Notes under the pieces: generated by a model
Told to the model about the DNA's origin: nothing
Databases searched by the model: none
Seen by the model: only the letters and a program-made list of their open reading frames with translations
Part shown: positions 19,410 through 56,252 of the stretch, piece after piece
Numbering within the stretch: the first letter of the stretch is position 1
Layout of the letters: each line of letters begins with the position of its first letter
Translations under genes and position numbers: made by a program
Origin: Octopus sinensis
Lineage: Eukaryota
Direction: 5' to 3'
DNA: 64,000 nucleotides
NCBI RefSeq assembly: GCF_006345805.1
Contig: NC_043014.1
Span: 186,001-250,000 of the forward strand

Positions 19410-22177
19410 CAGGGTTGCCAGTTTAGCATATTTTATGCTAAATCTAGCATTTTTTTTCAGCATTTAGCAGAAAATTTTTGAATCTAGCATTTAGCAGGGA
19501 AAATAGCAGGTTTAAAATTTTATTTAGCATTTTTTAGCATTCTTCTCTGATCATGACATTTCCACAATAGTTACCCTTTTTTTCTTCTTTTTCCTCCTTT
19601 TCTACTTTCTCGTTAATGTATCTTACAGCCAAATTTTTAGTACTATCGGTTATTGTTGAATTTTTCTTTCACTTTTTTGAAACTTCAAATGAAAGTTTAT
19701 CAAAAGGAAGTTTATCAAAAGGAAGTTTATCAAGTTATGAACTTTTCCAGCATCCCCCCACCGCCTCTGCCACCGGCTTGTGGGGGGAGGGGGAGGAGAT
19801 AACTCGTGTCAGCACCTGAACTCCCTACACAATAACATAAATATATTGCAAAGAATGAAAGCATGCAAATTCGTCCTAACATTGCTTTATTCTGTCCTGA
19901 TGAGTTTTTGTCATGACAGGTTGACTGATTTACTTTCAGTTTGACTATTTAAAAGTAGGCCTGTGTTTTTTCATGCTTGTTTCAGATTATATATCTTGTA
20001 TAGAAGTACGGCAGGGTTTCCCCCTTTATATTTCTACTTACTTTTTTTTTTTTTTTTTTTTCAAGTATTGTAGTTATATTTGTGATTTTACCAATAGATA
20101 TTAAATGTAAGATTGGAAGCAAAATATAATGTTCCCAGGTTTATATCAGAACACAGTTTTGGGATTTCTGCAGATTCTACTTTTCCATTTATAAGTTGGT
20201 CACCCTGCATCCTGAATCAGTATTGTTCATCTCAAGAATTTGTAAGCAGCAAACATAAGAATTGTTGACAACGAATGAAGGAATTGTTAGCAGCAAACTG
20301 ATAAGTTGTGTTTTCAATTTTATATTTTTATTAATCATTCAATTTATTTTCTTGCTTCCCACAACATTATAATGAGAAAAGAAAAAACAAGGTTGTACCA
20401 GCAAAAATTCCAAAAGGTATGGCTTAAGATGCCAGCATTTACTAAACTGTTGTGTGAGAAATGTTCTAGTGCCATATTTTGATGGAGATTTGATTTCTGA
20501 TACAGGAGATAGAAAATTTAGCCTGTTATTAGATGAATCCAAATGATATATCGATAAACAAGTTGTTAGGAATTGTTATCATATATTACAGTGTCACTCA
20601 CAAAAAAGTAGTACATACATATCTCAGGATGGTATCTTTAGAAATATGTGATGCAGATGGCATTGTAGATGCCTTGAAAATTGAATTAGTGAAAAAGAAA
20701 TTAGATATAAAACATTTCCTGGCCATAGGAACTGATTGTTCTAGAGTAATGATAGGAGTCAACAATGGTGTTTTCCAGAAATTAAAAGAAGTTCTATCAT
20801 TACTTCTATTTAGATGTGTATGTCATTCTTTACTGTTGACAGTATCCCACATTTGTGCTAAATGCTTCCCATAAATTTAGAACTTTTAGTATCCAAAATC
20901 TATAAATGGTTCTCTCATTCTTCAACAAGACAAAGTGCCTACAAAAACTTTACCTTGCTATCAATGGTAAAGAGCCTTTGAAGATTGTGAATTCTTGTAC
21001 CACTAGGTGGCTGTCAAGAGAACCAGCAGTAAATAGAATTTTAAGCCAATGGTTTGAATCCAAACTCACTTCCAAACTACAAAGAAAAAGGCTTTACAGC
21101 ACAAACGTTACATGAAATGTTTTGTGATCTAGGAATGAACTTTACCTTTTATTTTTGCATCCAATTTTAAAACATGTTCAGGAAGTGACTAAACTGTTTG
21201 AATCAAACACTGTCGACAAAACAAAATTACTTGAAGATCTTTCAAATTTGATCAAATCTGTTGCTAATATGATAGTATCGCCAACATGTAGAATTGATCC
21301 TCTCGATCCGGATGCTTCTATTGAAACATTTCTGGATTCTAAACCAAATTTAGGCTACAAGTTCGAGAGAAAGATAGCAGAAATGATTATCAAGAAGACT
21401 GTAACAGCCACCGAAGAAAATAATATTCGCAAAAGAGCACAACAATTTTTTATTCTACCTTTATAAAGAGCTCAAGTACTGTTGGTCAGGAAATATTAAT
21501 ATACTGAGGAATATCAAATATCTTTCAGTAGAGAATATTTTGCAGCATTTCAAAGAGCCAATTTTACCTGCCTTTGAAGCAATGCATTTAAATGAAGAAA
21601 AAATCACTTCAATTGAAATTCAATTTAATAACATTCATTTAGTTAAATGGACAAATACATCTAGTACTGAGGCATTCTGGCTAGAAGTCTTGGAATATAA
21701 AGATGCTACTGGAGGAAATCCTTTTAGAGATGTCGCAAATTTTGCCATTAATCTGTTGACATTGCCAAACTCAAAGGCAGAAGTTGAATGGTTGTTCAGT
21801 AGTATGGGAGTAATCAAATCAAAATTGAAAAACAAAATGCATCTTCCTATTCTTAGATCAATACTGTCTATAGAATATGGCCTGAAAAGATATGGCAAAT
21901 GTTGCAAGGACTTCGATATTCCAAAACGCATAATTAAAAAGATTGGGACCCTGAATGTATACAGAAGTCAAGTTCTAGATACTGCAGCTGGAAGGGGTCA
22001 AAGCAGTGAAATTCAAGAAATTATTTCTCAATGCTGAATATAATTAAAGAAAGTAAATAAAAATGTAAGTAAAAATTAAGCTTTTTGATATAATTAGTCT
22101 TTAGCATTTTTTGGAATGTTTTTGGTATTTTTCTACTGAAATTTAGCATAAAATTCAGATTTAAGGTGGCAACACTG
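19410..22177 (+). mobile_element. hAT DNA transposon (2768 bp), both ends intact, transposase defective
   Basis: TIRs cagggttgcca / tggcaacactg (10 of 11 match). Perfect 8-bp TSD cttgtgag at 19402-19409 and 22178-22185. Subterminal ttagca repeats. Confidence 0.95.
20372..22037 (+). pseudogene. Frameshifted hAT transposase
   Basis: Motifs in order across frames: LLDES (D), IGTD (D), CVCH (CxxH), TTRW, SKAEVEWLFS (E, dimerisation domain). Confidence 0.9.
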
Positions 22178-28110: not shown

Positions 28111-29399
28111 ATGGTTAGGGTCAAGCAACTGACAAGCAAATCTGGGGTCTTAAGCTGAATACTTGCTGTAGCCCTTCTTTTACACCAAGACAATACATGT
28201 ACATAAAAACTTCCAATCAGTTTAGATCAGAAGCCATGAGAACTGGTGCCCGCTGCATCAGCATCAGCATCATCATCATTATCATCATCATTACAATTAT
28301 TATTAATGTATGAAGCACATTCGAGTGTGATCGTTGCCAGGGCCACAGATTGGCTCCTGTGCCAGTGACACGTGAAAAGCACCATTCGAGTGTGATTGTT
28401 TCCAGTGTCACTTTACTGGCACATGTGCTGGTGGCACGTGGAAAACAACATTTGAGCGTGGTCGTTGTTAGTGCCATCAGACTGGCTCCCATGCAAGTAG
28501 CACATAAAAACATCTTTTGAGCATGGTCGTTGCCAGAACCGCCTAACTGACCGTCATGCCAGTGGCACATAAAAGCACCCACTACACTCTGGGAGTGGTT
28601 GGCATTAGGAAGGGTATCCAGCTGTTGAAACTCTGCCAGATCAGATTGAGCCTGGTGCAGCCTCTGGCTCACCAGTCCTCAGTCAAGCTGTCCAACCCAT
28701 GCCAGCATGGAAAGCGGACATAAAATGATGATGATGAGGAGGAGGAGGAAGATTGAGTTAACTCTTCTCAAAGGTAAATAGTCTATAAGAAGAGCAGGAT
28801 ACAATTTGTAATAGAAATCGACTCTGTTTATTGAATTGAACAATATTTCAAAAGTATGTCTGTCTTCCTCAAATTCTTTCATCTTTTTCGTTTTTTGTCC
28901 TGAAAGTAAAAAAGAAAACAAAAGGAAAAAAGGAAAAGAAACTGGAAAAGGATTTAAGTTGTACTGAGCCAATGAATGAGGGAATAATTTGGCTAAAAAT
29001 GATTGAAATATGTGGAGAAGTCATCTTTACTTTTATGACAAATGTTATGAGACCAACTTGTTAACGCTATCTTGAACATGATAACAGAAAATTTTCCTGA
29101 AATTTCTATACTACCTACCATTTTTTCTTACACTGAATTCCTCGCATACTGTCCACACCTCATATTGTTTACCCATCACATCAAAAACAATCACTTTACT
29201 TTATTGATCAATTTTTTTCAGAGATGTCTATGTTTATGAAAGTTTAAATTTACCATATTACAAGAGCTAACCACTCAGATAACAATACTCTACTCACCAT
29301 AAACAAACATTAACTCCTACAATTCAACATGTTCAAATAACTAATCCCCAGGTTGGCCCATATGATTGTGACATTTTTGCCCTTCCATACACATTTGAA

Positions 29400-31545
29400 C
29401 TAATCTCTGAAAACTCTTGAGAAGTTTTTATTTTAGCAATTGAGAGTCCAAACCCATTTTAGTTTTTGCCTTAAGAGCAATAAATTTGTTTATTCCCAAA
29501 AGTTAAAGTTTTTCAAATGCCAACAAAAACCAAAGAAGTCGCTCACTTTCTATCACCCATCCACAAATGGGTTCCTCCTAGAAAGACAACTAAAAGTTAT
29601 GACTTCTACGTAACTTTTGTCTCCCAATAAGTCTCATGTTTTAAGTGAAGAGTTTCGGCAAAAATCAAAAGATAGTCAGAAATTTAATGACAGTAACAAT
29701 GTGGGAAATAATTACCCAAGAAGATCTATCTTGTTAGAAAATTAGTTGGTTATAAATCTAAGTTAAAACTCTTAGTAGATGATATTTCCATCTTCGACCT
29801 TGGACTGAGATTCTGCCCAAGCACTAAGAATTTTCACAAAAATAAAGTAACCAAAAGATTATTTCAGTTTGGTCACTGTTATAAGCCTAAGGAACATATT
29901 TTTGAGAAAAACGGTTAAGAAGGAGTTGGAAAATCCAATGTTTATTGAAAATGATGATAATTAAACCTGGTGTAATTGGATTGAAAATATCCAAATTGGA
30001 TGAGTTTGGTGAGGACATTTACAAGCACTGCTAGAATTTCTTGAATGTTGTCAAGCAAGACATTAGGGAAAGTTTCAAAACAAGTAAAAAAAAAAAAGAC
30101 TTGGAATAACCTTATCCCAGCATAAAGCACTGTGTTATTGTTAAAATGGCTGATAAGGATGGGGTACTACTCTTATTATGGACAAGGATGAGTATACTTC
30201 AGCTTTTGAAGAAGATTTAAATGGCACAACTTCTTATGAAGAATTACATATTGATTCAAACTTGAATTACAGAGAGGAACTTGACAAAATAATTTTGGAA
30301 ATGGAGGAAAAAAATTTCATAAATGTAACTGATTCTAGGATTTTATGGTCAGAACAAAGAATACCTCTTTTTTGCCTTCCAAAAATACACAAAGAGTTTG
30401 AAAATTTTCCACCATTGCCCCCAATTTGTAGCATGTATAAATGTTGCACAACTAAAATTTCAGAGTGGTTGGATGGCTTCCTACTCCTTGTAGCAAAAAG
30501 ATCAAATTCCTGTATTCAGGATACTTTCGATTTTGTGTCCAAAATTACCACTTTTTCTAAGCATCAAATTAGAGTCAAACAATTTTTTTTTTTTTTTTTG
30601 GTTACCATGGCTGTTTCTTCACTATACCCTGACATTGACTGTGATGACAGGATGGGAGCATGCACAAATGTCTTTGAAAAAAGGTCAAACAAAAGTATTC
30701 CATTTCATTTTCTCTGTGAAATAGTTGAGTTGAGATTTTGCATTTCTGAGACTGCTTCACATAAAACTACGGCTTTAACTCTAATATAAAATTCTGATCA
30801 AGTTTTTCAAAAATTAGTGTCAAATTTTGGACACAAAAATTAAGTTTTCAGAAGGTTGAAATGTTATTTTGTAAACCCACATCATCTTATATTTATCTTC
30901 ACCACTGCTCCTCTCATCCACATCATATAATTAAGTCAAATTTGAAGCCTCAACTTTTGAGGATAAAATAGATTTGTATGACATAAGGGATTACTGGAAA
31001 CATGCAAACAGCCTTGTGTTCCATTATGTCAAACATGGTTACAGTTAATCATGATTAAAGGAAATACCAAATGTCATAGCTGAAATTAGCAAGGAAAGTC
31101 AAATGTAGATGCCTAATTTTTGCAAAGTGAAATTTACGACCGAATTCCTTTATTGATTAAGTTGCACCAAAATTTCACTGGCATTTCAAAAGTGTTGCTT
31201 GAAAGTTACTAGTATATTTCAGAAAAATATCCTTGTCAAACAAATATTTCTTCATCCAGACTTCAGATGCAACAAAAACATAAGAGAACAATTAACCAGT
31301 ATCTGTAATCCCAATAAAAACTCGATTAGAGTTTCCGCATGTCATGGCCTGAAAAACAGCCACAAGAGAGAGTTGACTCCTGTCCATTGTGCAGCAATAA
31401 GAATCAAGTCCACTCCATCACAAATCATAAGAGAAATGTTATAATTTATACAGAAGGTGGAACCTGTAAGCATTCCCATTTGGTGTACACAACAGGATGC
31501 ACCCAGCACAACTTGGCTTATGTTGGGTTATTCTCTGCCTCATGT
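29400..31545 (+). mobile_element. Penelope-like element (RT and GIY-YIG remnant)
   Basis: LGLRFCPS near 29800; LPKIHK...LPPIC, KISEWLD and LVTMAVSSLYPDI (RT); TCKHSHLVY..GCTQHNLAYVG (GIY-YIG-like). The 5' boundary is approximate. Confidence 0.8.
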
Positions 31546-31669
31546 CTGATATTCACTGTTGTTATGATCATCATCATCATCATCATTATTGTTGTTGTTA
31601 TTATGTTTTTCTTATTTTTGTTATTTTGTTGTTGTTGTTGTTGTTATTACTATTATTATTATTATTCAG

Positions 31670-31774
31670 GTGAAACTCTATTTCAAATACACTCAAGGCC
31701 ATATAATTCTTACGACTAGTTTTGATGGTCAGCCTTTAGCCAAAGTCAAGGTGAAACCAATTAACCCATATCAG
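31670..31774 (+). CDS. C2CD2L: C2CD2L-family exon (SMP): VKLYFKYTQGHIILTTSFDGQPLAKVKVKPINPYQ
   Basis: Acceptor (att)n-cag, donor CAG/gtgtgt, 105 nt, phase 0-0. Positionally equivalent to the TMEM24 'ISWAFTDRPDLSLTVLP' strand (recalled). Confidence 0.82.
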
Positions 31775-34512: not shown

Positions 34513-34755
34513 GAGTCTGAAGAAGTTGTTGACCTTGGAGTAGTAGAAGAAGTTGTCCGCAACGCACTGTGTATGTCCTCAGTGACTATCAACATGTCTG
34601 ACTACCTGGGATTGTCATCCAGCTTTGACTCAAGCCACGACCTCGACTACAGGCCTCTGGTCACCTTTCCTGAGTTTGATGAAGAGATGCCTGTTGTAAG
34701 TCATAATATAACCGATCAAGTTGCTCTCAGTCATAAAATAGCTGAGATATACAGG
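34513..34755 (+). CDS. C2CD2L: C2CD2L-family exon (end of SMP plus linker): ESEEVVDLGVVEEVVRNALCMSSVTINMSDY...EEMPV(VSHNITDQVALSHKIAEIYR)
   Basis: Acceptor gttcctag. Donor AGG/gtgagt after 34755, or GTT/gtaagt after 34695; both phase 0. The helix VDLGVVEEVVRNAL matches the last SMP helix of TMEM24. Confidence 0.88.
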
Positions 34756-39532: not shown

Positions 39533-40689
39533 CTCTTTTACTGCAAGACACCTAATTCTGTTCTATTTATATTGTAACCTCACTTGGCACAAAGCCACCT
39601 CCCTGAATACTGCTCAGTTGTGGGGTTTTGTAAATTAGTTGGTGACCTCACTGCTGATAATGCCATGTAAAAAGCACCCAGTGCACTCTATAAAGTGGTT
39701 GACATTAGGAAGGGCGTCCAGCAATAGAAGCCATACCAAAGCAAACAGCAGAGCTTGGCGCAGTCTTCTGGTTTGCCAGTTCCTGTCAAGTTGTCTAACC
39801 TATGCCAGCATAGAAAATGAACATTAAATGATGAGGGTATATATTATTTATAAGTTATTTGTATATTTAGAATGATAGGTGCTGAGAAAGTGGGCATTGT
39901 AGAGGATGAGAGGGAAGGAGAAATTGAGCAAACAGTAGAGGTAGGGATCAGGGGAGAGTAGACGGATGGATAGCTATGTATGTACACACACACACACATA
40001 CACACATATATATATACATATATATACATATGTGTGTATGCATGCATGCATCTACCTGCTCATTCATCCTCATTATCATTATATCCATTTTTCCATGCTT
40101 GTGGGTTTGCTAGGTTGACTCATACCCAGCATCATCTCACTGCTCATCTTTCATCTCTGAAGCTCGCTATCCTTACATGAACTTTCTACAATTCCTCTTG
40201 TGTTTTTCTCAGTCTTTCTTTCAACCCACATTCCTTGATATATCATTCCACAATTATTATCTTCCCCATACATCACAAAGCCCCACCTCCACATCTCAGT
40301 TTTTCCCTTCTTACTATCTACTACATTCACACACACACACACCCTCACACACACTCACTCTCACATACACATACACCCTCACACACACTCACACATACAC
40401 ACACCGACACAGACACATACACATTGTCCTTGACTTACACATCAGCACTTGTCTCAACGTCCTCATATGTTCACTTCAGTTCCCTTAATAAGAGGTTTCC
40501 ACAGCTCTATTCTATTGTTTCATATCTTAATAATAATAATAACAAACTACAAGGCCTGAAATTTTGTGGGAAGGGCTAGTCAGTTTTATCGACCCCAGTA
40601 CTCCACTGGTACTTATTCCATTGATTCCAAAAGGATGAAAGGTAAAGTCAACTGCAGAGGCATTTGAACACAGAATGTAAAGACAGGCA

Positions 40690-41400: not shown

Positions 41401-42082
41401 GAAGAAGAATTGCTTCAAAAGCATCCAGTACACTTTGTAAATGGGTTGGCTTTAGGAAGGGCATCTGGCCATAGAAACTATGCCAAAGCAGACATTTTGA
41501 TCCTGGTGCAACCCTCCAGCTTGCAGGTTCCTGTCAAACTGTCCAACCTGTGACAGTATGGACAACAGACATTAAAAAGATGATGATGATGATGATGATG
41601 GTGATGAATATTCAACTGGAGTTACTCCTTCCACTGCCCTCATTTTGCTCCATCCTCTTGGCCCTTATATTCTTAACAAGCTTGCTTGCCACCACATCAC
41701 TACATTTCACTAAGAGCACCACTACTACTGCCACTGCTACTCCCACTTTTCCCTCCCTCTTACCTTTTAGATTCCTGAGAAACTAATTAGCTTTTAGAAG
41801 GCACCAACAAACCAATCAATCAACCAGCCATGCAACCACTAACAAAAGGGGTTTCCCTCCCCCCTCAGCTTCTCATCCCTGTTAATAATAGATTCTTATA
41901 TGTGTACCACTCCTTTAGCCAAGAGTTCTTCATTTATCTTTGGAATGTTGTGCAGTTTTCAACAAAGTCTAATACTGTTGGTAGTGTCTTCATATAATCC
42001 TATTAAGTGGTACCTTGAGCAGGTGTTTCCACTACAGCCCCAACCTGACCAAAACCTTATGAGGAAATTTACCTAACTGAAA

Positions 42083-44060: not shown

Positions 44061-44215
44061 GTTTCTGATATATATATATATATATATAATATTAATTAGA
44101 GACAAAACCACTATTATGCAAATCAAACAAAGAAAGACTTAATCCAATACAAGACCTTCTTTGCAAGTTTTAAACTGAAGACTTCAGTTTAAAACTTGCA
44201 AAGAAGGTCTTGAAA

Positions 44216-44261
44216 CCACCTGATGAATGTCAATAGAAGTGACAAGAAACGATCGTAGTGG
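44216..44261 (+). ncRNA. Minimal type I hammerhead ribozyme in a Penelope pLTR
   Basis: ccac-CTGATGA-a-tgtca(atagaag)tgaca-a-GAAA-cgatcg-TA-gtgg: all conserved core bases present, three helices, palindromic stem III. The base of stem II is an A.A mismatch. Confidence 0.8.
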
Positions 44262-44587
44262 ATATCTTAATTATATTTAATTTATAAAATTTTTTTATGT
44301 ATTGGATTAAGTCTTTCTGTGTGTGTGTGTGGGTGTGGGTGTGTACATACGAACTGTTTAGGACAATCAGTAAGTTGTCATAATAGTACTCAGAGTTTCA
44401 AATGCTGGAGCTAAGAGCTACGATGCATTCTCATTGGCTATTAATGGCAACAGACACCATAAAATAACCGTTGAATAAAAGGGAAGTTACTCTAATAGTT
44501 AGGAAAAAATATAAAAGATAAAAAATACACGCAACCATATTCTCACAACACATAGACATGGAAACCTCCTGCGTTGATAACATCTAC

Positions 44588-44665
44588 ATATGTACACACT
44601 CACACAAACATGTATATGTACACACTCACACAAACATGTATATGTACACACTCACACAAACATGT
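44588..44665. repeat. Minisatellite, 26-bp unit x3
   Basis: atatgtacacactcacacaaacatgt repeated three times exactly. Confidence 0.95.
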
Positions 44666-46649
44666 AGGTACATATACAGACTCATACACATATCCACACA
44701 CACATCATCATCATCATCGTTTAGTGTCCGCTTTCCATGCTGGTATGGGTTGGACGGTGCAACTGGGGCACATATGAACATAAGCAACCACACTTCTAGG
44801 GGTTTTTTTTTCTCCTCCTCACTTTACAAAGCTTTCACCAATTCTGAATTATGATAAAAAACACATTTGCCAAACTTGTCATACAATGGGATTGAACCTA
44901 AGACAATGGAGTTAGTGAAGTTGCTAACCACTCACTCATACTTAACACAAAAAATAAGTTTTAAGTGAGTTTGACATAATTGTGTGTTTTGAGAGCAGCA
45001 CACAACCATGCCTTGGCTTAGGATTCCAAGTGTTAAAATTTACAGCATAAAAAAATGGTATTTTTATTGGATTCTGGAGAAGGTATAATTAGTAAGAAAT
45101 GCTAATTACCTCATGAACTAAATTAGTCTCATATTGAAACATTCAATTAAACATTATTCTTTAAACATTGACTTACAGTTAAACATTAACCGAATCAATG
45201 CCCTTTAGTCAAACCATCAAGGATCATCCACTCATTATTGCACTTTCCTCTCAGCCCTTAATTCTATTTCTTTTGTTTTAATATTTTTTTTAATCTGGAT
45301 TTAACTCCAGATTTTAAGTCTATTTCAGAAAGTAACTTTTGACGTCAAGGTAGAAATTCTCTGTACAAACAGATATCTATAACATCTCAAACACACACTC
45401 ACACACCTCCACAATGATAGGCAAGTCCCTCAATACTACGTCCAAACATTTTCCAACTAAGGAAGAAAAACTTGCTCAGATTTCACTTCAATTCATCAGA
45501 AAATTCGTAAATACAATCACCCGTTCGGTACTGATATCCAACACTTCTTTGGTAAAATAGTAATAGAATTTTGTGATTGTTGTTGTGGAATATTAGCACT
45601 GTTGGTGTTTACTTTAACAATGGGAGACAATAGATATGTGAAAGGTATGTGGTGAGAGAGAGAGAGAGAGAGTGTGTGTCTGTCTGTGTCTGTGTCTGTG
45701 TGTGTGTGTGTGTGTGTGTTTGAGACACAGCTCCAGTTTAAAATAATTTCGACTCCACAGCCATGTAGTTATTTCAAAACAAAATCTTATCAGATCAAAT
45801 CTTGTCAAGTATGATCTGAAGCAATTCTATCAGCCAGGCCAGCCACGGCCATCAAAACAATAAGACTCAGACTGAATTCATAGATTTTGCATTACATGGG
45901 TTTCAATGTTGCTTTCTGCAATCTCTTATTTATTTAATGGCTTGGTTTACAGAAAAGAAGATTGTCCTCTGATGTTCTTCACAAGACCCTAAGACCAGAA
46001 CATAAAGGCAATTGTCCCCACCTAAAAGTTAGAGGTTGCAAATGAAATGCAGGGAACTGCTTGTCCTCGTGTTTCCAGTGTTTGGATGCCTTTCCAGTCA
46101 CAATTTTCATGATGACAACAACAACAACAGCAGCAACAGCAACAACATTCACAATGCCCACTGCCACCACCACCATTACATCTATAAGGGTCACCATTAT
46201 TAACACCATCATTTTCTCCATCACTCAATCTCCACTTCTTTCACCCGTTCACCTCATCTTCCTTTCACCTCTGTCCTCTTGTATTTAAACATTTAACTCC
46301 ACTCTATTGCTTTGTACACACTCCCTCCATACATTGCTGAAAATTTCTGTTATGTTAAAAATTATAAAAGCATTGAGTCTTCCAAATTGCATTCAATGTT
46401 AATTAATATCTAATGTAATTATGCTTAATTAGTCAGTTAATAGACTGAGATCACCTTGATAGCTCCAATAGTTGCTGCCCTCAACATTAGTCACAGAAAC
46501 ATTGCTTGTAGCCCTTCATTGGACAATTCCTTAACAACAGCTTTTCTTGTCTTTTACTGTTTTCTCAAACTATTCCATCATTAATACATTCAATTATTGT
46601 AAACAGAAATATATTAATGTCACTTTATTTTCTATGTCAACAGGTTTGT

Positions 46650-48032: not shown

Positions 48033-48812
48033 TCTCCTCAGTAAAACCTAACTACCAAACCACAGAATGACTTGTATGTGTTTGTAGTTTTGGTGTGAAA
48101 ATAACTGATTAGGGAATCTAAAATGACATTGATTAGAAAATTTCCTATGGGGCCTCTAAATGGAATACATAGATTTAATATTAATTATGATGATGATTGG
48201 CACCAAATAATTTCTGATTCTACATTCCAGCCATGGCCACCTTGTCTTATCTACAAGTATAAATGTTCAGTGTGTCTAAGATGGTAAGGTGTGACTTGAA
48301 GTAGATTTGGCTGTTATTTCTAGTTTGTCAAGCAAGCACATGCAGGCCCCTTCATTGGCTCTATTAATATTACAAAGCTAGCTAGGCAAATTAATCCCAA
48401 TATTTTACTGTTACTTTATTTTAATGACCCCAGAAGAATAAGAACAAAGTCTACCTCAGTGGAATTAGAGCTTGCAACCTCAAGACAACTATACACAGTA
48501 GTTTGTCCTTTACCAATAGTCCTGATCTAGATAAATAGATAACTTTCAAGTCACACCTTACCATCTTAGACACACTGAACATTTATAGTTGTAGACAAGA
48601 CAAGGTGGCCATGGCTGGAATGTAAGATTAGAAATTATTCGATGCCAATCATCATCATAATTAATATTAAATCTATGTATTCCATTTAGAGGTCCCATAG
48701 GAAATTTTCTAATCAATGTCATTTTAGATTCCCTAATCAGTTATTTTCACACCAAAACTACAAACACATACAAGTCATTTTGTGGTTTGGTAGTTAGGTT
48801 TTACTGAGGAGA
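48033..48812. repeat. Inverted duplication, ~270-bp arms with a ~240-bp spacer
   Basis: 48033-48302 is the reverse complement of 48543-48812 with few differences. Confidence 0.95.
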
Positions 48813-49789: not shown

Positions 49790-51040
49790 GCAGGTCTTCT
49801 CAAATACAGCAATGCACCACATTTCTCGGTCCTCTGTCATTTCCTTCATAAGGTTTAGCATTTTGAGATTGGCCTTCAAAACTTGTCTTCCTGGGTCTCC
49901 CTCTTCCATCGGCACTTCTTTATCCAGCTGTCCTCATCCATCTGCATCACATGACCAAACCAGTGCAGTCTCCTCTCTTGCACACTGCATATAATTCCTC
50001 TTATACCTAACTTCTTCTTCAATACACTCATGCTCTTTTGCACATGCATACAGACATGTCACATCCAGTAAAAGATACTAGCTTCGTTCCACTCCAGCCT
50101 TCACATGTCCTCCACATTCAGGGCCCACGCAGCATTGCAGGTTCACTCAGAGAGAGAGAGAGACTTTTGGTTGCCAACAGAGGTAAAAGCTCTCTGAACT
50201 CTCTCCATACTATTCTTGAGATTACACTTTCTGTATAATCTCCTCTACTGCTAAATAGGGCACCCAGGTAGCAGAAATTATCTACAACTTCCAGAGAGCC
50301 ACTGGGACATTTAAGGAGATCAATCTCCTGTGTATTTATGGCCATTATGGCTTCCGTACATCTTCCACATACAAATACTACTTTCTCTGTTAATCTTCTA
50401 ACTAATCTACTGCACCTCTTGTGTGTCCATAGCTTGCACTGGGTACACTGAATGGAGTTTCTGTCTACACCCTTACTACAGGGCCATTTCCCTGATGGGT
50501 GAAGGGCCCTGTCCAATTCTTTGCTTACTCGTACCTTAGTCTTTGCTAAGTTTATTTTAAGACTTAGATTCCAGGTTCTGGTTCCACACCTGAAATTTCT
50601 TTTATAATTCTGTTACAGACTCTGCTGAGGGCAAGATCACCAGCCTATAGTAGTTCCCATGGGCTTCCAGTCTTAGATTCCTCTGATATGGTTTTGAGGA
50701 TGATGATGAATAGGAGGGGGTTGAGGACCAACTCTTGGTGGACACCTACCTGTACACTAAATTCATCACTGTACCCATGGCCAACTCTTTCTTTGCTAAC
50801 AGCATCCCTGTATATGGCCTGTACTGCTTTCACAAGCCATTCATCTCTCCCTGGCTACCTCAGGCACCACCATATCACAGAATGGGGTACTATGCCAAAG
50901 GCTTTCTCTAGATCAACAAATGCCAAGTACAACAACTCGTTCTTAGCTAAATACTTCTTTTGCAGTTGCTTGTCTATGAAAATAGCATTCTTGGTACCTC
51001 TCCGCTAACAATGCTGATCTGCATTTCATCTAGTCTTATT
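49790..51040 (-). mobile_element. RTE-clade LINE fragment
   Basis: LYLAFVDLEKAF, QVGVHQELVLNPLLFIII and GSPWELL, followed by a Cys-rich insert and VVDNFCYLG. Confidence 0.85.
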
Positions 51041-51127
51041 CTGTTCCTAATTAATTGAGCTATAACTCCCTCTGTAATATTCATCACATGGTCCAGTAAT
51101 TTAATGCCTCTATAATTACAAGTCTCT

Positions 51128-51537
51128 CAACTTAACATGAATATCTTGTTGGAACACTAAATACTGCATTAATAGCCTTGAGAGAACCTCTCATATAGGC
51201 ACTTGGTGCATAAAAGCAGACACAAGAATCACCTGTTATGGGTGCCATAATTCACATGATTTTAGTCAACTGGACACCATCAATAGGAGACATTTGGTCA
51301 CCACATACCAAAACAAATTTCTCTGCTACAATATATAGAATATCTACTCAGACACTGATGTCACAGATCACCAGCAGGCTTATTTGTGACAGAAGCACTA
51401 TAATAGTGCTTCTGTCACAAATAAGCCTGCTGGTGATCTGTGACATCAGGTAATCTTTATGTCCAAATGCACCAAGCAACTATATGAGAGGTTCTCTCAA
51501 GGCTAAGGTGTTCTAACAAAACATCCATGTTAAGTTG
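51128..51537. repeat. Inverted-repeat element (~85-bp arms) containing a perfect 47-bp hairpin; related sequence at 61190-61600
   Basis: caacttaacatg...gccttgagagaacctctcatatag and its reverse complement; hairpin at 51355-51449. Confidence 0.85.
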
Positions 51538-52904
51538 AATATAAAGATTGCCTTTTGGTACTGATGTTGCTTCCATCGCTAATAAATAATATTTGTATGT
51601 ATGTATGTTTGTATGTATTGGTCAGTAGTTCACAAGTCCGAAAAGAAGAACACGTTAAAACTTTAGAGCAGTAACAACCTTTTAAGTGTGTATGTGTGTG
51701 TATATATATACATATATACATGTGTGTGTGTGTGTTTGTGTGTATACACACACATACAAGAAGAGAAAAGGGATTAAAAAATCCAGGCAGATATAAATAA
51801 AGCACTCAGTTTTAAACAAATTTGTTTAACTATATCCAACAATCAGAAACCAGTAATTGTAAGATGAATACACATCCAAGGTAACCCCCTCATCTATGAC
51901 AAATAGATCCAAATAGCCTTTAGAAGAAATTCAGAGAATTAGACAATAAAAATAGGATAGAGAAAATCACATCTTTAATTGATGAATTCACCATACAATG
52001 GTGACAATCGCTCCTGTTGTACAAGGCAATCTGAAATGAGTTAAATTCAAAGTGAACTTAGAAAATATCTCCAGTATACAAATGCATCCAAAAAGAACAT
52101 TGTTCACTGTTCTGTAACTACAGCTGTTGTGGCAAGTTTTACAGCCATGAGTTTGATTTTCTTTTCCATAGAAAAAGGTTTCAAACAATCTTAGTTTGAG
52201 GTATTTTCAAACAGCAATTTTGTTGATTGGTTCATTTCTTCTACGAAAGAAAATAAGACATTCACAAAAGGTATGGATTTCTCATTTACTTTGCATTTAA
52301 TCACATGTGGTGTTTTGTTATCTTTCAAATTCCATACATAGCTAGCCAACTTAGTAGCTTTACTTTTGCCCTTATGTCGGAAGGGGGCTATGTGATTGCC
52401 AGAGCAATTTTTAAATTCACCTTCATATAATATAAGTCTTCTTTTCTGTTGTATTATTATTTAGGATTGCAGTAACTTCTGCCTCACATATGATAGATTA
52501 AATCATATATCGTTGGTCAAGTAGACAGGATCTTGGGTTGCAACTGGATTTAGGCTCTTAAAGATATGTATTATGCCCTTTAAATAAACAATGTATGTGT
52601 GTGTGTGTGTGTGTGTGTGAGTGGTCGGCATTAGGAAGGGCATCCAGCTGTAGAAACTCTGCCAGATTAGATTGGAGCCTGGTGCAGCCATCTGTCAAAC
52701 CGTCCAACCCATGCCAGCATGGAAAGCAGACGTTAAACAATGATGATGATGATGGTATAAACCATTGGCCCTTGAGTCATTCTGTAACTTCTGCTAATGA
52801 TGATTAAACAGCCTCTCTCTATATATACTCATGTTTTAAGATCCGTTTTCTTGTTGCAACAGGAAAATAGAACTGTTTGTATATGTCCGCATACATGCAT
52901 ATAT

Positions 52905-54230
52905 ATATGTAAACTTGTCAATGCACTTGATTTTGTCTTGTCCAAGACTGACAAGTTCTGCTTGGGTACCACCATTTGACATGGCTTTGGTCTTTTCAGC
53001 ATTAATCTGCGATCCTGCTTTCACCTCTTAACTGTAAAGGCCATCTGTCATGGCCTGTAGTGTTTCTCTATTGGAGCTTAATAAGGACAAGTCATCTACA
53101 AAATCAAAGCCCATCTGTCTTTTCACTCCCCATGATATTCTAAAACTATCCATTGCTTCGCATCAGGAACAGAAATGGTGACAAGATACAACCCTGTTTC
53201 ACTCCAGTAACAGTTTTGGATATATCTCTGCTTCTACTGCTCTTCTTCACACAAGACTGAGTTTTTATTCACAGACTTAAAGATGTTGATATATCTGCTT
53301 GGAACTCCTTAGATTCTCAGAATATTCCAGAGTGAATCTTGGTGAATTCTGTCAAATGCTTTCTTTAAAAAAAATGAAATCAATAAACAGCTGCAGTCTA
53401 TGTTTTCTACTTTGCTCAGTTATATTCCACAACATGAAAATCTGTCCCACACAAGACCTGCCACTCCAAAATCCTGTCTGCTTCTCTCTCAACACAGTTT
53501 CAATCTCCTTCTTTAATCTATTCAGCAGGACACAGCTGTAATGCCATGCCAGCTGTTACAGTTCACCAGATTATCTTTTGGGGGTAATGGAACCATCATT
53601 CCATGCTTTCGATCATCTTGTAGGTCCTCCTGCATCTAAACAAGGCTAAACAGAACGTTGATAAGGTTGCCTGTCTTGGAAGCTATAGTTTCAAGTAGTA
53701 TGATGCAAAAGTCAGTGATAACCAGGATAGGTGAAACAACATCAGTATTCCAATACCTTCGTCCAATATGGAGATCAAAAACCATCAGTAAGAAGATAAA
53801 ACTTCAGCTGTACTCAGCTCTTGTTATACCAACAGGCATCTACTCCTGTGAAACCTGGAAGAAGACAGCAAAGGTCTCTCAATTGCTGGACATGTTCCCT
53901 CAATGCTGTCTACATTCAATGCTGGGTATTGCTTAGGAGGAAAGAGTGAGAAACAAAGAGGTGATGAGACGAGCCTGGGAAGTTTGCAGGAAATGGTGAT
54001 TAAGAGGCAGATAGAGTTTACTGGCAGGAGAGACAGGTTACCATTGTGATGGAGTGGATGCCAGAGACTGAAGGGAAGACCAAGGAAGATGTATGTTTCA
54101 GGAAAACATGAAAGCAAAAGGATCTGGCCCAAGTGGAGTCAGGAAGAAGGCAAGCAATCAGGATGTCTGGAGATTCAGAGAAGGCTCGTTACCTGTTGTG
54201 CAGAAAACACTGGAGGATCTAAGAGCTAAG
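52905..54230. mobile_element. RTE-clade LINE in two oppositely oriented pieces (52905-53625 minus, 53630-54230 plus)
   Basis: The minus piece runs from the RT N-part to CIDKFTY. The plus piece begins DKVACLGS...RIGETTSVFQYLRPIWRSK...IYSCETW and runs to the 3' end. Confidence 0.75.
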
Positions 54231-56104: not shown

Positions 56105-56252
56105 CGTACGTCTCTGGCACAACAATCCACATTACCATTTAAAAGGGTTCCGGCTCTGACTGCTCCTCCTCCAAAACCCCCAAGAGCAGTTGGAGACAAA
56201 CGGTTGTTTGTGAAAATTATTAAAGCAACAAGTCTTGGAGGAAGAGATGTTG
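56105..56252 (+). CDS. C2CD2L: C2CD2L-family exon (linker plus C2 beta1): RTSLAQQSTLPFKRVPALTAPPPKPPRAVGDKRLFVKIIKATSLGGRDV
   Basis: Acceptor ttattttcag, donor G/gtaagt, 148 nt, phase 0-1. RLFVKIIKA is the start of the C2 domain. Confidence 0.92.

Follow-up and report, generated by a model that had tools for sequence, protein, structure and literature searches.

A minimal type I hammerhead motif in a C2CD2L intron of Octopus sinensis, probably the solitary relic of a Penelope-like or retrozyme-type element

The host intron and its hammerhead motif

The window analysed here, the whole 64-kb stretch of the Octopus sinensis genome, carries on its forward strand a homologue of C2CD2L that is interrupted by an intron of 21.3 kb with GT-AG borders (34756-56104, +). 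The upstream exon (34513-34755) ends in AGG before GTGAGT, the downstream exon begins at 56105 after TTTCAG, and the two join in frame. A spliced model of six + strand exons (297 aa) matches C2CD2L of Aplysia californica (E 6e-56) as well as a protein with Pfam C2 and PF18696 (SMP_C2CD2L) domains, and the domain scan places a C2 domain at about 57.3 kb, again on the + strand. Inside this intron, in sense orientation and 11.85 kb upstream of the next exon, lies a 46-base minimal type I hammerhead-like motif (44216-44261, +). An earlier note had placed it on the sense strand of the C2CD2L intron between the exons bounded by 34755 and 56105, had given its letters and had predicted cleavage after 44257; the location is confirmed by splice sites, reading frames and homology, and the letters and cleavage site by our own reading of the sequence.

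Helix I is an open-ended stem of 4 bp, formed by CCAC (44216-44219) and GTGG (44258-44261, +). The first strand is followed by the C3-A9 core box CTGATGA (44220-44226), by an A directly after A9 (44227) and by helix II, in which TGTCA (44228-44232) pairs over 5 bp with TGACA (44240-44244) across a 7-nt loop (ATAGAAG, 44233-44239). A second A (44245) separates helix II from the GAAA of G12-A15.1 (44246-44249, with G12-A14 at 44246-44248), after which the sequence runs CGATCG (44250-44255) and TA (44256-44257). A15.1 (44249) pairs with U16.1 (44256), H17 is A44257, and the GUA triplet at 44255-44257 puts the predicted scissile bond at 44257/44258. The hammerhead core is complete, with 13 of 13 positions intact (C3 U4 G5 A6 N7 G8 A9, G12 A13 A14, A15.1-U16.1 and an H17 that is not G). 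Helix III (ACGAUCGU) is a 2-bp stem, an A-U and a C-G pair closing GAUC, and it coincides with an 8-nt palindrome (ACGATCGT, 44249-44256) that could pair with a second copy of the motif. At the base of helix II, positions 10.1/11.1 form an A.A mismatch, and the helix is not contiguous with the core. A44227 has no Watson-Crick partner and can be taken either as an unpaired nucleotide or as the 5' half of that mismatch; a G-C pair closing helix II beside G12 is absent in every register, as A44245 intervenes.

The same letters can be read in quite another way, with UGAUGA as the C box and CCAC/GUGG as the terminal stem of an intron-encoded box C/D snoRNA. A sense intronic position is typical of such RNAs, and Rfam returns a weak match to snoZ161_228 (18.6 bits, E 0.51). 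That score is far below the gathering score of 45 bits, however; the C box would have C, not R, as its first letter, the 38 nt within the stem do not make a snoRNA-sized body, and no D box (CUGA) occurs anywhere in 44262-44340. The snoRNA was rejected for its missing D box, and we give it virtually no chance of being correct.

To the window we applied a descriptor consisting of helix I of at least 4 bp, CUGANGA, helix II of at least 4 bp with or without one basal mismatch, GAAA, helix III and UH. On both strands 44216-44261 was the sole match, and it stayed so when one core mismatch was tolerated. Dinucleotide-preserving shuffles (n = 300) gave 0.02 matches per window; decoy descriptors with permuted core boxes (n = 1600), run on the real window, gave 0.006, or 0.00125 when the helix III palindrome was required. 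For one window the motif exceeds chance (expected 0.001-0.02 per 64 kb). Across a genome of a few Gb, the same rate implies roughly tens to hundreds of matches, so the motif alone is no proof of ribozyme descent. The main rival to a relic of a mobile element is therefore a chance match, in which an A/T-rich segment of the intron happens to spell CUGAUGA...GAAA...UA with short complementarity and never was a ribozyme, a possibility that we take seriously but consider doubtful. It gains from the many windows that were scanned, from helices of merely 4 bp (I) and 5 bp (II) and from the missing G10.1-C11.1 pair, the most conserved feature outside the core. It would, on the other hand, have to bring together by accident several independent traits specific to the hammerhead class, namely the 8-nt palindrome, a base bulged out behind A9 and a helix I that is short and open.

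The search for relatives cuts both ways on this question. Across the 64-kb window, the intron included, neither BLAST of the 240-nt surroundings, nor mismatch-tolerant patterns, nor the descriptor with one core mismatch detected another copy or a possible partner for dimerisation; exact stems with a free helix II retrieved 0 sister copies from metagenome and viral contigs, and 22 kb of O. sinensis likewise contained no further copy of the unit. This lack of family members favours a chance match; for descent from a mobile element, it means that there is no support from covariation or from a family. A looser pattern, CTGATGA and GAAACGATCGTA 12-26 nt apart, had 85 matches in public metagenomes, 84 of which are chance or bacterial coding sequence. 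The remaining one (L020; metagenome contig Ga0116226_10566335, 205-254) is a true minimal hammerhead, an independent and fully canonical textbook example of the type found in Penelope-like elements (PLEs). It reads cttac CTGATGA t GAATG...CATTC GAAA CGATCG TA gtaag, with an extra base after A9 and with G10.1-C11.1 present, and its helix III (GAAACGAUCGUA) is identical to that of the window motif. Among the 85 box pairs it alone has helices I and II, and this restriction of both stems to a true hammerhead speaks against chance as the source of the octopus motif.

The motif has no match at gathering score to the Rfam 15 hammerhead models (Hammerhead_1, _3, _II, HH9 and HH10), and on 44100-44360 no hammerhead is reported even at E<=10. 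Although this could be counted in favour of a chance match, it carries no weight, because the same models also miss the metagenomic control, which goes undetected even at E<=10. Curated hammerhead models leave a gap for the minimal subclass.

Local duplication and neighbouring retroelements

A perfect palindrome (44150-44212), whose 31-nt arms are 100% complementary around a 1-nt centre (44181), ends 3 nt upstream of hammerhead helix I. Farther out, a left arm (44131-44151) pairs with a right arm (44298-44318); the match covers 28 nt at 93% and includes a core of 21 nt that is perfect. The right outer arm abuts a (TG)n microsatellite (44319-44346), and 40 nt to the left of the foldback there is a run of (TA)n. 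When 44182-44330 (+) is aligned to 44119-44180 in reverse complement, both arms prove to be the same unit, and the right arm is seen to contain an 86-nt block (44213-44298, +) that is missing from the left. The block begins with AAA, continues with the hammerhead and ends in an A/T-rich tail of 37 nt, and TG is the sole dinucleotide repeated at its junctions. Over the inverted duplication (44131-44318), 52 of 52 bases are identical in two segments that meet at 44181, and the 211-nt RNA of 44120-44330 folds at -83.4 kcal/mol (z = -11.8). This places the hammerhead inside an indel that affects a single arm of a young inverted duplication.

No inverted homology extends beyond the outer arms in local alignments of the flanks, and neither a target-site duplication nor poly(A) was seen at the foldback or the 86-nt block; the foldback may be a TIR transposon or MITE, one lacking a target-site duplication and with inverted homology of just 21-28 nt. 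The window holds no other copy of the 240-nt motif region and no tandem repeat of the unit, and the open reading frames within ±1.8 kb of the motif contain no Pfam domain and no reverse-transcriptase or GIY-YIG remnant. In the pre-mRNA, 44131-44318 would form a near-perfect stem (31 bp + 21 bp), plausibly a substrate of ADAR or Dicer in a cephalopod neural gene, regardless of the hammerhead. Matches of miRNA families to the 31-bp palindrome were dismissed as generic hairpin matches far below the Rfam gathering score. Other repeats nearby include a tandem repeat 300 nt downstream of the motif (44562-44691; about 4-5 copies of the 26-nt unit ATATGTACACACTCACACAAACATGT) and SINE-like copies at 28571-28746, 39670-39834, 41417-41598 and 44705-44755. 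The same intron also contains a 268-nt inverted repeat (48033-48300 and 48545-48812, 97% complementary, 244-nt spacer), a second large foldback or TIR-type element with the same 60-codon open frame in each arm.

In the intron before this one, 12.5 kb upstream of the motif and on the same strand, is a decayed canonical PLE (29712-31716, +) consisting of ORF pieces with frameshifts and stops; it is not part of the motif. For one of these pieces (30157-30786, +), 876 homologues were recorded at E<=1e-3. Of the long ones that were scanned, three (P0016, P0023 and P0025) combine RVT_1 with a C-terminal GIY-YIG domain, the canonical PLE architecture, and the remaining ones have one of the two domains each. 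The nearest relative of the ORF pieces is LOC115222486 of Octopus sinensis (59-61% identity). More generally, the transposon-derived ORFs of the window are closest to sequences from Octopus bimaculoides and O. sinensis, and repeats common to the window and a 22-kb locus of O. sinensis are 83-88% identical. Canonical PLEs are described as carrying hammerheads universally, in their pseudo-LTRs (PMC8557442), an expectation that weighs against a chance match in a genome that harbours them. Elsewhere among cephalopods, 31 PLE families have been active recently in O. vulgaris (PMC13282606), and 235 Hammerhead_1 matches have been reported from the giant squid (PMC6962438). The genome region of the motif is one in which hammerhead-bearing retroelement lineages live, and the presence of canonical PLEs in genome and window raises the prior likelihood that a minimal hammerhead found there is of PLE origin. 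Counting against such an origin, no hammerhead-like box pair adjoins the PLE relic at 29712-31716, and five PLE-encoding loci, including the 22 kb of Octopus sinensis chromosome, hold neither a hammerhead by our descriptor nor a copy of the unit.

Further traces of mobile elements were noted along the way. A 210-aa open frame at 21405-22034 (+) resembles a hAT transposase relic (Dimer_Tnp_hAT, E 7e-4, just under the Pfam cutoff). Fragments of LINE-type reverse transcriptase occupy 50121-54000, mostly on the - strand, where a PHD-finger-like ORF (50121-50612, -) also lies, with relatives that are 53-61% identical, one of them from Octopus bimaculoides. A 6.4-Mb contig filed as metagenomic (L088; ENA ERZ25066847 ctg1202) is clearly eukaryotic and contains many ORFs encoding reverse transcriptase, including a gene with the PLE N-terminal domain (DUF8422).

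Dimer folding and descent of the motif

The motif was folded with ViennaRNA, by minimum free energy (MFE), by partition function and, for the dimer, by cofolding. In the partition function of the monomer, helices I and II have pair probabilities of 0.84-1.0 and helix III has 0.004; the monomer MFE structure pairs CUGAU with AUCG instead, which masks the core. The homodimer reaches an MFE of -25.0 kcal/mol, as against 2 x -8.4 (-16.8) for two monomers, and its fold has an 8-bp intermolecular helix III with swapped helices I. These models portray the motif as dimer-dependent in design, as is its class: minimal hammerheads work as dimers (PMC4209133, PMC6765202). As an isolated segment of 54 nt, the sequence folds no better than its shuffles (z = -1.3), a point in favour of a chance match.

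In our view the motif is probably a solitary, slightly decayed minimal hammerhead of PLE or retrozyme type, sitting on a short repeat unit and inert in its present context. The first support for this is the intact core with both helices, set against the chance rate for one window. In addition, the motif agrees in detail with the minimal hammerheads of PLEs (Cervera & de la Pena 2014, PMC4209133), which are also the subject of Lunse, Weinberg & Breaker 2017, as cited in PMC6765202. Like them it is of type I, with an open 4-bp helix I, a CUGAUGA/GAAA/UA core, one extra nucleotide after A9 and a 2-bp helix III whose palindromic loop permits a two-copy helix; like most of their copies it is solitary and away from a full element, in a metazoan genome with canonical PLEs. 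Beyond what a search descriptor asks for, the PLE hammerheads are distinguished by covarying families, by an additional nucleotide that separates A9 from 10.1, by strong conservation of the G10.1-C11.1 pair and by palindromic 15.2-16.2/loop 3 (PMC4209133). The inserted nucleotide and the palindromic helix III are found in the octopus motif, in line with that consensus; the G10.1-C11.1 pair is not. The helix III shared with the metagenomic hammerhead and the 8-bp intermolecular helix III of the dimer fold point the same way, as do the decayed PLE upstream, the O. vulgaris PLE families and the giant squid matches.

Inverted, 5'-truncated copies are frequent among PLE insertions, and so is integration into microsatellites (PMC8557442); the present arrangement, an inverted duplication pivoting on a single base with (TG)n adjoining and (TA)n close by, resembles such an insertion. 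This context is circumstantial evidence for a PLE-like origin.

Several observations stand against descent from a PLE or retrozyme. In the octopus motif A.A takes the place of the highly conserved G10.1-C11.1 or, equivalently, an extra A precedes G12, which argues either for decay or for chance. Helix II has 5 bp, compared with 6-8 bp in the described PLE families. No pseudo-LTR or ORF adjoins the motif, the nearest ±1.8 kb being free of PLE coding remnants, and the 86-nt block lacks poly(A) and has an end repeat of only 2 nt. The sequences searched yielded no family of sister copies, and the genome-wide chance rate permits tens of matches.

Animal non-LTR retrozymes offer a second comparison. 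They are tandem repeats of 150-450 bp with type I hammerheads that give rise to circRNAs (PMC7229834; bioRxiv 10.64898/2026.07.22.740005), and the octopus unit is likewise short, non-coding, low in G+C and highly self-paired, with a type I hammerhead and a short helix III; 'solo' monomers have been described among retrozymes. Unlike retrozymes, which have at least two consecutive tandem units, every one bearing a full type I hammerhead, the motif is single and not in tandem, and it has no loop-loop tertiary contacts. It is moreover intronic, whereas Xenopus retrozymes are depleted from introns.

How such a motif might have come to lie where it does can be sketched as follows. Minimal type I hammerheads are carried and scattered by PLEs and by non-LTR retrozymes derived from them. 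One may have reached the C2CD2L intron on a small repeat of roughly 137 nt (44182-44318), and a head-to-head inverted duplication would later have involved that repeat. During the life cycle of the element, two motifs pair through their palindromic helix III (here ACGAUCGU) into one active dimer. Here, with a single copy, a helix III predicted to be unstable in the monomer and G10.1-C11.1 presumably lost, the motif would be silent or nearly so, and no effect on splicing of the host pre-mRNA would be expected.

The earlier note had described an intact core and a PLE-type minimal type I hammerhead with palindromic helix III, and on this the sequence, the dimer fold and the published consensus (PMC4209133) agree with it. 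Its attribution of the motif to PLEs fares less evenly. Architecture and a PLE-bearing genome speak for it; the absence of PLE sequence adjoining the motif and of retrieved sister copies speaks against it, and we regard the attribution as plausible. The motif is, in short, a known kind of element that is mildly unusual in two respects, the A.A at 10.1/11.1 and a hammerhead block that forms an indel in one arm of a perfect palindrome.

Activity in the host transcript

The earlier note had gone on to suggest that the motif could cleave the transcript as it is being made and influence splicing. In this scenario an active intronic ribozyme, alone, in trans or helped by a chaperone, would cleave C2CD2L pre-mRNA after A44257 and lower or reshape mRNA output, in the manner of CPEB3. 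The complete catalytic core, a good GUA site and the sense position well ahead of the next exon are what one would wish for, and the expression of a host gene can be altered by a ribozyme in one of its introns (PMC10919898). Basal mismatches in helix II are tolerated to a degree: the axolotl hammerhead HHR_Amex2, with U.U where the octopus motif has A.A, is weakly active and cleaves 22% per hour (PMC7229834), and minizymes or hammerheads without helix II can keep some activity (PMC544870).

The model behind this functional suggestion is that of intronic ribozymes, the ultraconserved hammerheads HH9 and HH10 of amniotes (de la Pena & Garcia-Robles 2010, as cited in PMC6765202) and the HDV-like ribozyme of CPEB3 (PMC10919898). 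Like these, the octopus motif lies in sense orientation within a long intron of a protein-coding gene. Those ribozymes, however, are stable as monomers, make tertiary contacts, are deeply conserved and have had their activity measured; the octopus motif shares none of these features. A closer parallel is found in the satellite-2 hammerheads of newt and axolotl (Forster et al. 1988, as cited in PMC6765202; PMC7229834), which have a weak helix III and need to dimerise; there, long tandem arrays supply the partner that the octopus motif lacks.

The missing partner weighs against activity. There is no second copy in cis, the twin arm of the duplication being without the 86-nt block, and helix III of the monomer is predicted to be essentially unformed. 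Single minimal hammerheads show no detectable cleavage in vitro and dimers show low cleavage (PMC4209133), an axolotl hammerhead monomer cleaves 6% per hour (PMC7229834), and in Anolis RNA-seq no ends were seen at the PLE hammerhead site of the single PLE tested (PMC11167929). All of this favours inactivity of the octopus motif as it now stands. At usual rates of Pol II elongation, transit to the next exon would take an estimated 4-6 min, during which a monomer working at 6% per hour would cut fewer than 1% of transcripts. Slow intronic hammerheads reportedly leave splicing undisturbed, the exons staying tethered to Pol II, a finding said to come from Dye et al. in 2006; only fast hammerhead variants are said to abort processing, as Fong et al. 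reportedly found in 2009. Cutting of the nascent transcript with an effect on splicing is thus not supported, given the missing partner, the pair probability of helix III, the masked core, the A.A mismatch and the published behaviour of single minimal hammerheads. We consider an active ribozyme improbable, and an effect of the motif on C2CD2L output unlikely to the same degree.

A bolder variant would make the 86-nt block a tiny mobile or recombinogenic unit in a young palindrome and the A.A mismatch a functional, octopus-specific form that cleaves host pre-mRNA, for instance in trans or with the help of a chaperone, and so trims the output of a neuronal lipid-transfer gene. We hold this to be more improbable still. 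Should the motif be active, it would provide an invertebrate case in which a ribozyme of transposon origin cuts host pre-mRNA, something that very few intronic ribozymes have been shown to do; the present findings point the other way and disfavour it.

Read as the inert, solitary relic that we favour, the motif resembles one of the thousands of solitary minimal hammerheads left behind by PLE-type retroelements. Its A.A position would make a cheap test case for the weight of the 10.1-11.1 pair in dimeric minimal hammerheads. In practical terms, its value lies in marking past retroelement activity in the C2CD2L intron, and in serving as a reminder that Rfam misses this subclass.
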